Shown piece by piece: positions 1-39,490 of a DNA stretch of 64,000 nucleotides (its first letter is position 1; every line of letters begins with the position of its first letter). The stretch spans positions 62,001 through 126,000 of the forward strand of contig CDROCS010002027.1 in the NCBI GenBank assembly GCA_977020255.1, written 5' to 3'. The notes under the pieces were generated by a model. That model was not told where the DNA came from and did not search any database. It worked only from the letters and a program-made list of their open reading frames with translations. The DNA is from Obrimoposthia wandeli. Taxonomy: Eukaryota. A program made the position numbers and the translations under genes.

Positions 1-787
1 TCATATAAAAGCTATGATCTTGTTGCTCGTATACGAGCTCATCTGCCTGCTGCTGGGTACCTAGTTTATGGCGATAAACTTGAGTACCCAACAATGTTTG
101 CAAGTCTTTTTTAATATAGAAAACGTGCTGGTTATCATTCGCCCAAACCAAATCACCCTCTGTACCGATGAGTGAATCCGCTAACAAACTATCTGTTTCG
201 ATCTCTTTAAAAGAGATGGTGTAAATACGGCGACTATCAATATCTTCTGAGAAACTTAGTAACTTATCGTCGGGGCTGATAGAAAGTTCCCCTAGATCAT
301 AGTATTCATACTGTTCGGCGCGCTGGTTCGCATCGAGTAATAAGCAATGCTCGGTACTGTGCTGTGCTTGGGTGCGATAAAAACAGGCGAATTCTTGCTC
401 GCCATGTACTTGGGTGAAATACCAATACTTGCCATCTTTAGCAGGAATACTTTGATCATCTTTAACGATGCGTGATTTAAGCTCTTCAAAAATGGATGTT
501 TGCAGTGCTTGCTGAGGCTTTAAAACAGCATCAGCATAATCATTTTCGGCCTTTAGGTGCTCAAGCACTGCTTTGTCTTGGCGACTGTCATCACGCATCC
601 AATAATAATTATCAATGCGCTGCAGCTGATGGTTTTCTAACGTGTAAGGTATTTTTTTAGCGATTGGTGCACAAAGTATACTACGCGCGGCGATAGCTTC
701 ATCGCTTAACAATGAATGACTTACGTTTAATAAGCTTAAGTTATTAGAAGTATCGGTGTTAGCAGCATTGTAATTAGAATCAGGCAC
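1..787 (-). CDS. ptrB: Oligopeptidase B / protease II (S9 family), N-terminal part; runs off the left edge of the window
   Basis: Not in the ORF track. Manual minus-strand translation gives APIAKKIPYTLENHQLQRIDNYYWMRDDSRQDKAVLEHLKAENDY...LKSRIVKDDQSIP...LLDANQRA...YYDLGELSISPDDKLLSFSEDIDSRRIY, typical of the PtrB N-terminus and beta-propeller. The frame is open from a GTG at 787 (after an in-frame TAA) to the edge; the exact start is uncertain. Confidence 0.9.
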   Translation of the reverse strand, partial: MPDSNYNAANTDTSNNLSLLNVSHSLLSDEAIAARSILCAPIAKKIPYTLENHQLQRIDNYYWMRDDSRQDKAVLEHLKAENDYADAVLKPQQALQTSIFEELKSRIVKDDQSIPAKDGKYWYFTQVHGEQEFACFYRTQAQHSTEHCLLLDANQRAEQYEYYDLGELSISPDDKLLSFSEDIDSRRIYTISFKEIETDSLLADSLIGTEGDLVWANDNQHVFYIKKDLQTLLGTQVYRHKLGTQQQADELVYEQQDHSFYM

Positions 788-6159: not shown

Positions 6160-6630
6160 ATGAATCAAACACAGCTCGATGAACAGTTCATGCTGCAAGC
6201 TTTAGCTATATCAAAGCAAGCTTTGCCGAAATGTTTACCAAATCCACCTATCGGCTGTGTTTTAGTTAATGCTAACCAAGTAGTTGCCAGTGGCTATACC
6301 CATGCTCCTGGTTTTGCACATGCCGAAGCTGACGCATTGGCTAATTATCTGGCAACAACAGATATTGCAGCGCAAGATTTTTCTGAGCTATCCGCTTACG
6401 TCACTTTAGAGCCATGTTCGTTTTATGGACGCACACCCTCGTGTGCTCTCGCGCTAATAGAGCACAAAATAAAAAGAGTGGTTATTTCCCTAGTAGATTC
6501 AGATCCTAGAAATAATGGAGCTGGTATTAACTTGTTAACCAAAGCTGGAATTGAAGTTCAGGTCGGTATTTGTAACAGCCAGGTAATCCATTTTTTATCC
6601 CCGTTCATGCACGCGATTGAAGCAAAATAA
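6160..6630 (+). CDS. Stand-alone RibD-type Zn deaminase domain (no reductase domain)
   Basis: PNPPIGCVLV, HAE, TLEPC..GRTPSC and DSDPRNNGAG motifs; only 156 aa. Confidence 0.8.
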   Translation: MNQTQLDEQFMLQALAISKQALPKCLPNPPIGCVLVNANQVVASGYTHAPGFAHAEADALANYLATTDIAAQDFSELSAYVTLEPCSFYGRTPSCALALIEHKIKRVVISLVDSDPRNNGAGINLLTKAGIEVQVGICNSQVIHFLSPFMHAIEAK

Positions 6631-35984: not shown

Positions 35985-36686
35985 CTAGCGTAGTCCCTTG
36001 TGACGCGCTGCTTCCATCACTACATCCAAGACTTGATCTATCGTTAACTGCGTAGAATCTAGTATTAATGCATCTTCAGCGGGTTTTAAAGGCGCTATTG
36101 CACGCTGCGTATCTCGTTCGTCTCGTTTTTTTAGTTCAGCTAATATCATTTCAAGGCTAGCATCCAGCCCCTTATTTATCAACTGCTTATATCTACGACT
36201 TGCGCGCTCTTCGACACTTGCATCTAAATACACCTTTAATTGTGCCTGTGGAAACACCACAGTCCCCATATCACGACCATCAGCAATAAGCCCTGGCACA
36301 TGTGAAAACTCGCGTTGCCTATCTAGTAATGCACTGCGTACTCCAGGAATTGCCGCTATAACTGAAGCCATATTCCCTGTTTCTTCTAGACGTAATTCTT
36401 GAGTAACAGATTCCCCTTCCAGAATAACTTGCAGATCATCTTCTCCTTCTTGTACAACAAACTGCACATCTAAATGTGCCGCTAGTATTTGCAACGCATC
36501 TTCGTCTTCAACTGAAACACCATGGTGTTTAGCGGCTAGAGCAGTGAGACGATATAAAGCACCACTATCGAGTAAATTCCAGTTAAACCTTCCTGCTAAA
36601 AGCTTGCATATTGTCCCCTTACCAGAACCACTAGGACCATCAACCGTAATCACTGGACTGATTGATTCGCTTTTATTTTGAGACAT
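35985..36686 (-). CDS. cmk: Cytidylate kinase
   Basis: [30 protein letters not shown] and RDERD. Confidence 0.97.
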
Positions 36687-37346
36687 TAGTCTCCTCCTTT
36701 CTTATTATAATTCCAGCTCGTACTGAAATGTCTACAAATTCTGGAAATGATGTCGCCACTTGTGAGCAATTAAGCACCTTGACATCGACACTTGATCTTA
36801 AACCTGCCATCGCAAATGCCATTGCATTACGATGATCTCCTGCACTATCAACTGTCCTAGCTTTCAGTTGACCACCTTCAATAATCACGCTTTGTGCTTT
36901 TTCCTCTACTGATATACCTAATATGCGTAACCCTGTAACCCTGCAACCAAGACTGCAATTGGAGCGCTCTCTTTATGTCTGAATTCAGCTAATCCACTAA
37001 TTTCAGTAACACCTTTAGCGCAGCTTGCTGCTATAAAAATAATTGGAAACTCATCTATTGCAGCACAGACAAACTCCTGTGGGATTATAGCGCCCGTTAA
37101 TTCGCTATATTGTACTTTAATATCAGCAATAGGCTCATCATTAACCTCTCGATGATTGATTAATTCGATGTTTGCACCCATTAAATCTAAGATTTTTAAC
37201 AAACCTAAACGCTTAGGGTTAACGACAATTGCTTTTAATAAAACGTTTGCACTAGGACAAATAAGTGCTGCTACTATAAAAAATGCTGCGGATGAAAAAT
37301 CACCCGGCACAATTATCTCGCCCTTAAGCCTTGATCCAGGCTTAAT
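36673..37346 (-). pseudogene. aroA: aroA (EPSP synthase) remnant, formerly fused to TyrA
   Basis: In frame with tyrA across a TGA at 37347-37349. An internal deletion joins the N-terminal VPGD to the mid-protein (F)SSAAFF. An 8-bp duplication TAACCCTG x2 (36928-36943) shifts the frame. DEFP, KES and DHR..M motifs are still recognisable. Confidence 0.93.
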
Positions 37347-38318
37347 TCAAAAAATGGTATCTATTGTTTCTGAATCTGCGATAGATGCAGTGCCGGTGAG
37401 CATTGTCCCAAAGTGTTCACGAGCATTACGCGCCCTAATAAAAACGCCTTTTATCTGTTGCTCATTTTCAGTAGCTATCGCTTGTCGCAAGTACTCTAGA
37501 CCGGTGCTAAAAGTATCTATTTGTTGCAAAATAGCATCTTTATTGGCATAGCATACATCACTCCACATCGTAGGATCTGCTGCAGCGATTCGCGTAAAAT
37601 CACGAAAACCTCCCGCTGCGTATCGAAATATATCTAAACTCGCCGATTCTTTAGCGAGCGTATCCACCAGAGAAAATGCTAACAGATGCGGTAAATGGCT
37701 AGTAGCGGCTAACACTTCATCGTGCTTTTTCGCTTCCATTTGCAATACTTGTGCACCTGTACTTTGCCACATACGCGCGACAACCAAGATCGCTGATTCA
37801 TTCGCATTTGTATGCGGTGTTAAGATCACTTTATGTTTTACAAATAATTGGCTATTTGCAGCTTCAACACCACTTAATTCGGAACCTGCGATAGGATGAG
37901 CCGGTATAAAATTTGCGGGAACAATACCGAAAACATCAATAGCAGCCTTAATCACGCTTCCTTTAGTACTGCCTACATCACTGATGATCGTATCAGCTTG
38001 TATGTCGTCTTTAATAAGCTCTAAAACAGCGGCTGTCGCTTTTACAGGGACCGCTAAAATAATTACATCCGCCTCTCGCACTGCACTTTCAAGGCAGTTA
38101 CTACCTTGATCGATAATACCGAGCTTAACACCTAACTCAAGTACTGGTTGGCTGTTATCATAGCCAACAATTTTTCTTGAAAAGCCATTTTCTTTTATCG
38201 CTTTAGCCAACGATCCACCAATCATGCCCAAGCCAATTATTAAGGTACTTTGCACTTTGTAGAATTCTTCTTGGTCACTGTTTTTAGCAATGCTTTGGCT
38301 AATTCCTATATTCGACAT
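37347..38318 (-). CDS. tyrA: Prephenate/cyclohexadienyl dehydrogenase
   Basis: GLGMIGGS, DVGSTK, HPIAGSE, SHLPH and GGFRDFTRIA are intact. Confidence 0.93.
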   Translation of the reverse strand: MSNIGISQSIAKNSDQEEFYKVQSTLIIGLGMIGGSLAKAIKENGFSRKIVGYDNSQPVLELGVKLGIIDQGSNCLESAVREADVIILAVPVKATAAVLELIKDDIQADTIISDVGSTKGSVIKAAIDVFGIVPANFIPAHPIAGSELSGVEAANSQLFVKHKVILTPHTNANESAILVVARMWQSTGAQVLQMEAKKHDEVLAATSHLPHLLAFSLVDTLAKESASLDIFRYAAGGFRDFTRIAAADPTMWSDVCYANKDAILQQIDTFSTGLEYLRQAIATENEQQIKGVFIRARNAREHFGTMLTGTASIADSETIDTIF

Positions 38319-38353
38319 ACACTCTTTATCTCAAAGACGAATTGTTCAGTATT

Positions 38354-39490
38354 TTAAAGAACTGCTCGCGGGTAGGATCCCAGTATTTTAATTTCGCCGC
38401 AATTGGCGGCTAATTGCTGCAAAATGCGTTGAATGGTTGGTTCGCTTTGATGTCCTTCAAAATCAATATAAAAAACGGAACAGTCAGCGCCTAACACACT
38501 TTCTCCAGTGTAAGTATCGATACGAGTCAAACTGACTTCGTTTTCCCTAAAGGGAGCTAATAGAGAATACAAGGCGCCAGGTTGGTCTTTCGTTGCAATA
38601 AGAATTGAAGTTTTATCCACCCCAGAAGGGGTAATATGCTGGCGACCCACGATCAAAAATCGTGCCTTATGCTCATTACTACTACTAATGTTTTGCGCTA
38701 ATATTCGTAACTTCAAAGAAACTGCGCCATCTGAGGCAATAACAGCACTACTTTCTTCTGAAACAGCCATCTGCTGAGCCTGCTCTAAAGAAGATAGAGC
38801 GATGCGTGTTGCACCAGGGCAATGTTTATCTAACCACTTGCTGCATTGATTTAAAGTCTCACTCAGCGCATAAACTTTTTTTACGTCAGGTAATGCTAAA
38901 TTATGTTGCTGATCATTAGCGCTAGCATACAAATGTAACTGAACATCTAGGTCAACTTCACCACAGATATTTAAAGAGTAGCGTTTAAATAGGTCTAAGG
39001 TTTGATTTGCCACCCCTTGAGTACTGTTATCTATAGGCACTACTCCGTAATTCACATCACCACTTTCAACTTCTTTAAATACCTGGTCTAAAGAGTTAAC
39101 CGCTATCGTCATTGCACTATTGCCAAAATGCTTGTGTGAAGCAAGTTGAGCAAAGGCACCAGCTGGGCCCAAATAAGCAATTTGTAAAGGTTTTTCATGC
39201 GCTAGGCATACTGACATCACTTCGCGAAAAAGCCTTGCAACCGCTTTATCTTCAAGTGGGCCTTCGTTACGCTCCATTACTTTGCGCAGTACTTGAGCTT
39301 CACGTTCCGGACGGTAAAAGACAGCATCATCAGTGCCTTGGAATTTTTCTTTTACCACTGCAACTTGCTGAGCACAGCTCGCTCTTTGATTAATCAGCTG
39401 ATGTATTTGTTGATCAATAGCATCAATTTGAATGCGTAATTTCAGTAACTCTTGTTCTTGTTGTTCTTGTTGTTTTGGCTGAGCAGTCAT
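38354..39490 (-). CDS. pheA: P-protein: chorismate mutase + degenerate prephenate dehydratase + ACT
   Basis: The CM domain is intact (LR..ID..D...R...K..YRPERE). PDT/ACT architecture is present, but its catalytic motifs are substituted. Confidence 0.9.
   Translation of the reverse strand: MTAQPKQQEQQEQELLKLRIQIDAIDQQIHQLINQRASCAQQVAVVKEKFQGTDDAVFYRPEREAQVLRKVMERNEGPLEDKAVARLFREVMSVCLAHEKPLQIAYLGPAGAFAQLASHKHFGNSAMTIAVNSLDQVFKEVESGDVNYGVVPIDNSTQGVANQTLDLFKRYSLNICGEVDLDVQLHLYASANDQQHNLALPDVKKVYALSETLNQCSKWLDKHCPGATRIALSSLEQAQQMAVSEESSAVIASDGAVSLKLRILAQNISSSNEHKARFLIVGRQHITPSGVDKTSILIATKDQPGALYSLLAPFRENEVSLTRIDTYTGESVLGADCSVFYIDFEGHQSEPTIQRILQQLAANCGEIKILGSYPRAVL

Follow-up and report, generated by a model that had tools for sequence, protein, structure and literature searches.

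A Probable Young aroA Pseudogene with One EPSP Synthase Domain Excised, Downstream of tyrA in a Relative of the Osedax Symbionts

An intact tyrA gene followed on the minus strand by the remains of aroA, the gene for 5-enolpyruvylshikimate-3-phosphate (EPSP) synthase, was analyzed in a 64,000-nucleotide stretch of DNA from the Obrimoposthia wandeli assembly GCA_977020255.1 (contig CDROCS010002027.1, positions 62,001 to 126,000 of the forward strand; hereafter the window). Very probably they are a young pseudogene, derived from the AroA part of a once bifunctional tyrA–aroA gene, in a member of the Oceanospirillaceae akin to the Osedax symbionts. Their state would be due to three lesions: an in-frame 639-bp deletion between two PGD motifs, by which domain 2 of EPSP synthase (EPSPS) is lost; a TGA in the TyrA–AroA linker, which makes TyrA a free-standing protein, apparently still under selection; and an 8-bp tandem duplication. 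A two-codon change of the catalytic KESDR motif to KESAP comes on top of these.

The Remnant and Its Lesions

The locus shows the marks of a pseudogene: it carries disabling lesions, relatives have intact orthologues, and its variation is neutral. Its descent from a TyrA–AroA fusion is evident from the common gene string (gyrA, serC, pheA, tyrA, the AroA remnant, cmk, rpsA, and ihfB on the minus strand of the window) and from a collinear alignment with the fusions of three relatives, referred to as L012, L013, and L014. The features of the locus, in the direction of transcription, are as follows.

37347..38318, minus strand: tyrA (prephenate/cyclohexadienyl dehydrogenase), intact, 323 codons; PDH_N at 1e-40, PDH_C at 1e-26
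37347..37349, minus strand: TGA separating TyrA from the AroA remnant, in the old TyrA–AroA linker
37299..37346, minus strand: AroA N-terminal strand IKPGSRLKGEIIVPGD, 16 codons, collinear with LQPGGCLSGEITVPGD of L012
37299..37310, minus strand: VPGD motif; the next codon, F, is at 37296..37298, minus strand
37296..37307, minus strand: deletion junction PGD|F, with 213 codons (639 bp, EPSPS domain 2) gone between the two PGD motifs
36948..37298, minus strand: AroA C-terminal half, first frame (FSSAAFF...VAGL); PF00275 positions 219-347, E 2e-22; PRK14806 positions 519-656
36960..36974, minus strand: KESAP, replacing the catalytic KESDR
36928-36935 and 36936-36943: 8-bp tandem duplication, TAACCCTG twice, causing a frameshift
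36673..36927, minus strand: AroA C-terminal part, shifted frame (RILGISVEE...EETNVSK); PF00275 positions 347-415; PRK14806 positions 654-732
36691..36699, minus strand: cmk Shine-Dalgarno sequence AAGGAGGAG, within the final aroA codons, recognized from the letters; all relatives conserve this stretch
35985..36686, minus strand: cmk (cytidylate kinase), intact, downstream; PF02224 at 1e-75

A first-pass annotation, made from the letters and their open reading frames (ORFs), had described tyrA as ending at a TGA beyond which the same frame leads on to FSSAAFF. Minus-strand translation agrees with this: the gene reads ...SETIDTIF, then TGA, and the frame runs past the stop through IKPGSRLKGEIIVPGD-FSSAAFF to close at ...KESAPIAVLVAGLQGYAY and a further stop. 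The 16 residues leading up to the junction align collinearly with the AroA N-terminal strand, which lies at the same distance from the REHF motif of TyrA as in the full fusions. Aligned with the intact fusion genes of L012, L013, and L014, the locus shows a gap of exactly 213 codons, from PGD(KSISHR) to PGD(xSSAAFF), so that the first VPGD is indeed joined directly to the sequence that follows the second motif. The V of VPGD derives from the first site, the second being IPGD in the relatives. At the DNA level the two sites match in the relatives only as CC.GG.GA, about 5 nt of exact identity, and slippage or illegitimate recombination at this short PGD-coding repeat may have produced the deletion.

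Because equivalent positions of the internal repeat of the enzyme are joined, the deletion is domain-precise. What remains, the N-terminal strand plus the C-terminal half, is the composition of one EPSPS domain, and the other domain has been removed in frame. The clean excision of one structural domain at its hinge motifs, as claimed in the first-pass annotation, thus stands on the 213-codon gap and on the fold match of a corresponding tail in Pseudomonas; the hinge positions follow this fold match and the structure of the Escherichia coli EPSP synthase.

In the profile searches (Pfam and NCBIfam) the tyrA product corresponds to PRK14806 positions 3-299, positions 300-518 of this model have no match in the window pieces, and matches to TIGR01356 are restricted to its positions 215-340 and 339-408. 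The three pieces score 418.5, 149.2, and 68.1 bits against a curated cut-off of 902 bits for the bifunctional TyrA–AroA model (NF011381/PRK14806), and none of them attains it. An active EPSP synthase has two complete domains; here the PGDKSxSHR region and the residues of domain 2 that bind shikimate 3-phosphate and phosphoenolpyruvate are gone. KESAP, a change that the first-pass annotation had noticed, stands where L012, L013, and L014 all keep KESDR, and the D and R of this motif are 93-98% conserved in 84 functional sequences.

The frame shifted by the duplication reads GLRILGISVEE...EETNVSK and ends with TAA at 36673-36675. When one copy of TAACCCTG is removed, the remnant becomes the 221-codon frame overlapping the start of cmk that had been predicted from the letters alone; its TAA sits 14 nt within cmk (ATG at 36684-36686), and the overlap is identical in the intact L012 (fusion end at 6177, cmk start at 6164). 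The remnant is now in neutral drift, with constraint left only on its last codons, which hold the cmk ribosome-binding site and the start overlap.

A Graded Series of aroA Decay among Relatives

Relatives were reached only through searches with RpsA and Cmk; looking up the exact TyrA product, and scanning genomes with TyrA 8-mers, gave no hits. The RpsA of the window shares 94% identity with that of one Oceanospirillaceae metagenome-assembled genome, 89% and 87% with those of two further ones, and 86% and 83% with those of the Osedax symbionts Rs2 and Rs1, respectively, and in the TyrA tree the window groups with L012-L014 (support 100/99). Judged from these sequence comparisons, the carrier of the locus is a marine Oceanospirillaceae bacterium related to the Osedax symbionts.

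Intact single TyrA–AroA genes of 738-758 aa, overlapping cmk, are encoded by L012, L013 (Rs2), and L014 (Rs1), and the species representatives L015 and L030 likewise carry a full-length fusion overlapping cmk. The fusions of L012-L014 (NF011381, PRK14806) are found at the orthologous locus, share 74-76% identity with the window in TyrA (76% for L012) and 59-62% in the remaining AroA, and have in common with it the C-terminal RKEETNVSK and the 14-nt cmk overlap. In contrast to these, the window lacks the 213 codons and has the linker stop, the frameshift, and the altered KESDR. The site of the TGA is a sense codon in the relatives (E, V, or F), which shows the stop to be derived.

Other relatives have eroded the gene differently. 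In L010 (5901-6183) and L011 (1030-1312), 283 bp separate pheA from cmk; tyrA and aroA are gone, and the spacer retains the final 24 aroA codons (FPAFVEK...RKEETNVSK). L010/L011 represent the relative with 89% RpsA identity. Directly before the 24 codons, and in frame with them, stands CLSGSI, which resembles the AroA N-terminal strand (CLSGEI in L012) in a weak match (E ~8); from its sequence, this may be another deletion from the N-terminal strand to the C-terminus.

The closest relative, L009 (GCA_036960485.1, with the 94% RpsA identity), shows a dS (synonymous divergence) of ~0.5 from the window for both cmk and rpsA. Its positions 1-560 are a patchwork of the end of pheA, about 10 tyrA codons, TyrA residues 73-108, and AroA residues 580-613 and 640-737; the scraps carry stops and frameshifts, without the 8-bp duplication, and tyrA, intact in the window, is lost. 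The lesions of the window are young relative to the split from L009. We had considered L009 positions 104-205 as the start of an AroA C-terminal half, and rejected this, as tblastn assigns them to TyrA residues 73-108. The clade is shedding aroA in a graded decay series, and no intact half-AroA ORF was found among the close relatives examined, all of which are full length or irregularly eroded at this locus. Such ORFs do occur in the Pseudomonas syringae group.

Read Support and Strain Variation

Read support was taken from Logan contigs of two runs (X1 and X2) of one sample, which is probably the source of the assembly, so that the runs are not independent. Both the TGA and the VPGD|F junction are spanned by exact contigs (X1 record 5, 37227-37456; X2 record 13, 37289-37602). 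The 8-bp duplication is covered by a variant contig of ~95% identity only (X1 record 4, 36797-37169); this contig has no indel at the duplication, and hence both copies, and an extra 1-nt deletion at 37092. Two of the lesions are thereby confirmed letter for letter, and the duplication in a strain variant.

The strain variants in these contigs comprise 17 nonsynonymous and 6 synonymous changes in the remnant, 4 and 8 in tyrA, and 0 and 3 in cmk. The ratio in the remnant (17:6) differs from that in tyrA plus cmk (4:11; Fisher p = 0.007), and variation in the remnant now looks neutral while the neighboring tyrA and cmk stay constrained. The KESDR site reads KDRDP in the strain variant.

Half AroA Domains in Pseudomonas and Other Losses of the AroA Moiety

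A word search with TyrA, the length window of which made it blind to full fusions, returned many intact proteins of 523-545 aa composed of TyrA, the AroA N-terminal strand, and the AroA C-terminal half. Their named members belong to Pseudomonas syringae, P. viridiflava, P. tremae, P. coronafaciens, P. floridensis, and P. huanghezhanensis; the others are metagenomic. This half state is real, long-lived, and already published (PMC1173090): Song, Bonner, Jensen et al. 2005 (BMC Biol 3:13) described how, in the fusion of P. syringae, the AroF (EPSP synthase) domain is shortened by a deletion of ~200 residues, tied it to an acquired stand-alone gene resembling that of Agrobacterium, and proposed that the remnant might become a regulatory domain.

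The Pseudomonas half fusions resemble the window in having the gap in the same alignment columns and a tail of 239-243 aa after REHF (242 in the window), and in lying within the same gyrA-serC-pheA-[tyrA-aroA]-cmk-rpsA-ihfB string, with the stop overlapping cmk. The hisC gene between pheA and tyrA is lacking both in the clade of the window and in the P. syringae group, and is kept in Nitrincola-type genomes (window 37350-38354 compared with L001 and L007). In Pseudomonas, however, the fusion is one unbroken ORF of 526-545 aa in hundreds of genomes, whereas the ORF of the window is broken by a stop and a frameshift, and the Pseudomonas half is under purifying selection (dN/dS, the ratio of nonsynonymous to synonymous divergence, of 0.11-0.30 for the half and 0.03-0.06 for TyrA, in ten species pairs), in contrast to the neutral variation (17:6) of the window remnant. 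An AlphaFold (AF2) model of the P. syringae tail has a predicted local distance difference test (pLDDT) score of 83 and a predicted template modeling (pTM) score of 0.81, and matches the Coxiella EPSP synthase 3roi_B with Z 28 and a root-mean-square deviation of 2.3 A; the 206 aligned residues span positions 12..433 of that chain. The tail is thus predicted to fold as one EPSPS domain, formed by the N-terminal strand and the C-terminal half. In the TyrA tree the half forms lie within a Pseudomonas clade (98/94) apart from the clade of the window, so the two excisions are independent.

One Pseudomonas-like protein from a metagenome, P0050 (535 aa), has a slightly different junction (LYRPGP-ELSAFF) and a tail of 243 aa; in the TyrA tree it falls outside the other 18 half forms and together with a stand-alone TyrA (85/77), and it may represent a third independent excision. 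Hits of 209-250 aa in a representative search were considered as free half-AroA proteins and rejected, because they are pieces of ordinary enzymes with KESDR, called from an internal Met onwards.

The AroA moiety is completely lost in Nitrincola and relatives, in P. gingeri (L045, L062), and in Endozoicomonas sp. ALC020 (L029), the last three loci having TyrA directly before cmk and no AroA sequence; on these gene sequences, complete loss from the fusion appears to have occurred several times in the Gammaproteobacteria. In Nitrincola iocasae and similar genomes a TyrA of ~316 aa ends in the old linker and is followed by cmk with no AroA in between, whereas the window keeps 221 recognizable codons. 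A stand-alone TyrA before cmk seems to be the end state towards which the window is heading. The Nitrincola-type stand-alone TyrA, which the word search had reached first, did not prove to be the nearest kin of the window. In N. iocasae CP044222 (L001:6001-7026) the 316-aa TyrA ends in ...LGVDKPGE-stop, 75 bp before cmk; these last residues resemble those with which the AroA N-terminal strand begins, which suggests that the gene was once a fusion and has lost almost all of its AroA part.

Weighing Decay against Retention and Filtering

Several observations weigh against simple recent decay. With microhomology as weak as ~5 nt, random deletion would be unlikely to create an identical PGD–PGD junction in two lineages, and some filter may have acted, possibly selection for an in-frame, foldable TyrA tail, which would hint at a translated intermediate. 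No second aroA was found within the 64-kb window. Window positions ~36827-37226, which include the duplication, have no identical contig, and of the 17 differences between the window and X1 record 4, 13 are packed into 49 nt (36944-36992) around the former KESDR. Over these positions the contig reads ...GIAQLILKDRDPIAVMVTG..., with ~27% local divergence compared with ~1% elsewhere in the contig. Uniform drift fails to explain this cluster, which may reflect a tract of recombination or a chimeric contig.

The identical junction could reflect a short translated stage, to which we give a little less than an even chance: the deletion would have come first, as one of few tolerable ways to inactivate AroA, since TyrA was left with a compact folded half-AroA tail and translation still ran into cmk, and the TGA, which freed TyrA, and the decay of the tail would have followed. 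In favor of such a stage, one junction was reached independently in Pseudomonas and in the window, the weak microhomology in the relatives favors a selective filter over a mutational hot spot, and the frame is open up to the cmk overlap; yet the sequence holds no clue to which lesion came first, a strong Shine-Dalgarno sequence serves cmk itself, spacers of 75-283 bp are enough in relatives, and complete loss of AroA is also common, as in Nitrincola, P. gingeri, and Endozoicomonas ALC020. Since the junction is identical in two lineages despite weak microhomology, a filter for in-frame, fold-preserving deletions during translation of the fusion suggests itself. The broader proposal, that AroA is switched off recurrently, under a selective filter, by excision of domain 2 at the PGD motifs and that the window shows the step after a translated TyrA plus half-AroA stage, is in our estimation rather unlikely.

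The first-pass annotation had gone further and suggested that the half-AroA may have persisted as a noncatalytic C-terminal domain of TyrA before decaying, which would mean long retention by selection and a breakdown only lately. The deletion is in frame and domain-precise, just two further ORF-breaking lesions have accumulated across 221 codons, the P. syringae group maintains the same architecture under purifying selection with a tail predicted to fold as one EPSPS domain, and L009 is also without domain 2, which would be compatible with an old shared deletion. The conserved positions argue otherwise. Using as reference the 41 AroA columns that are at least 90% conserved among the 84 functional sequences, the window differs at three (an L to F change, plus the D and R of KESDR), functional enzymes at 1 (median) or 3 (90th percentile), and the Pseudomonas halves at 12-16. 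From the alignment, residues needed only for a complete active site thus appear nearly all retained in the window, while the long-kept Pseudomonas halves have had their catalytic residues replaced.

Divergence relative to TyrA points the same way. The ratio dN(half)/dN(TyrA) is 1.37-1.81 (mean 1.57) in five window-relative pairs and 1.29-3.09 (mean 1.76) in ten pairs of intact genes, so that there is no nonsynonymous excess, and the "many substitutions" of the first-pass annotation amount to ordinary lineage divergence. The identity of 58% in the C-terminal half compared with 76% in TyrA was considered as a sign of excess divergence and rejected, the C-terminal half being normally the faster part in this clade. 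For the half domain of the window no dN/dS is given, because dS to the intact relatives is saturated. Since the conserved columns, the TyrA-relative dN, the strain variants, and the states of the close relatives, none of which has an intact half ORF, all fail to support it, long retention of the half-AroA under selection in this lineage is very improbable.

An assembly artefact at the junction or the frameshift, hiding a gene that is in truth intact, a possibility the first-pass annotation had itself raised for the junction, hardly merits belief: it could draw on the stretch without an identical contig, but exact Logan contigs reproduce the TGA and the junction, the duplication recurs in the variant contig, assembly errors do not typically take the form of an in-frame loss of 639 bp at homologous motifs, and L009 is even more eroded at the same locus. 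Expression of the remnant by stop read-through and programmed frameshifting at the duplicated octamer, for which nothing speaks beyond open frames on either side of each lesion, can practically be dismissed given the extra 1-nt deletion at 37092 in the strain variant and the 17 nonsynonymous to 6 synonymous changes in the remnant; nor was any slippery or recoding signal of a known kind seen, though none was looked for specifically.

We therefore retain the reading as a young pseudogene. Given that pheA and tyrA still appear functional, a further EPSP synthase encoded at another place in the genome would have made the loss of AroA tolerable; alternatively, the pathway as a whole is being lost.

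Implications

The locus should be annotated as a pseudogene and tyrA as a gene of 323 codons, and models of aromatic amino-acid metabolism in this symbiont-like bacterium should assume no AroA activity from this locus. The new elements are modest: the junction known from Pseudomonas has arisen independently a second time, and one clade shows graded stages of decay. In two unrelated lineages a two-domain enzyme built from internal repeats has been shortened by exactly one domain, with the break at the same residue; one lineage kept the leftover for long and the other discarded it quickly, while sister lineages erased the gene in other ways. Together these provide a natural comparison for when a dead half-enzyme is retained. 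Were excision indeed recurrent and filtered, the half domain would serve TyrA (in stability, oligomerization, or regulation) or the expression of cmk, and the Pseudomonas half, kept across many species, would show how, in nature, a catalytic domain can become a structural appendage.

The Neighboring PheA

The PheA encoded at 38354-39490 of the window comprises chorismate mutase, prephenate dehydratase (PDT), and ACT domains. Its PDT match scores 150 bits, compared with 144 and 134 in relatives with an intact AroA, and its CM_2 match 79 bits; the ACT match is weak in all three proteins compared. At the level of these profiles PheA does not look like a pseudo-enzyme.

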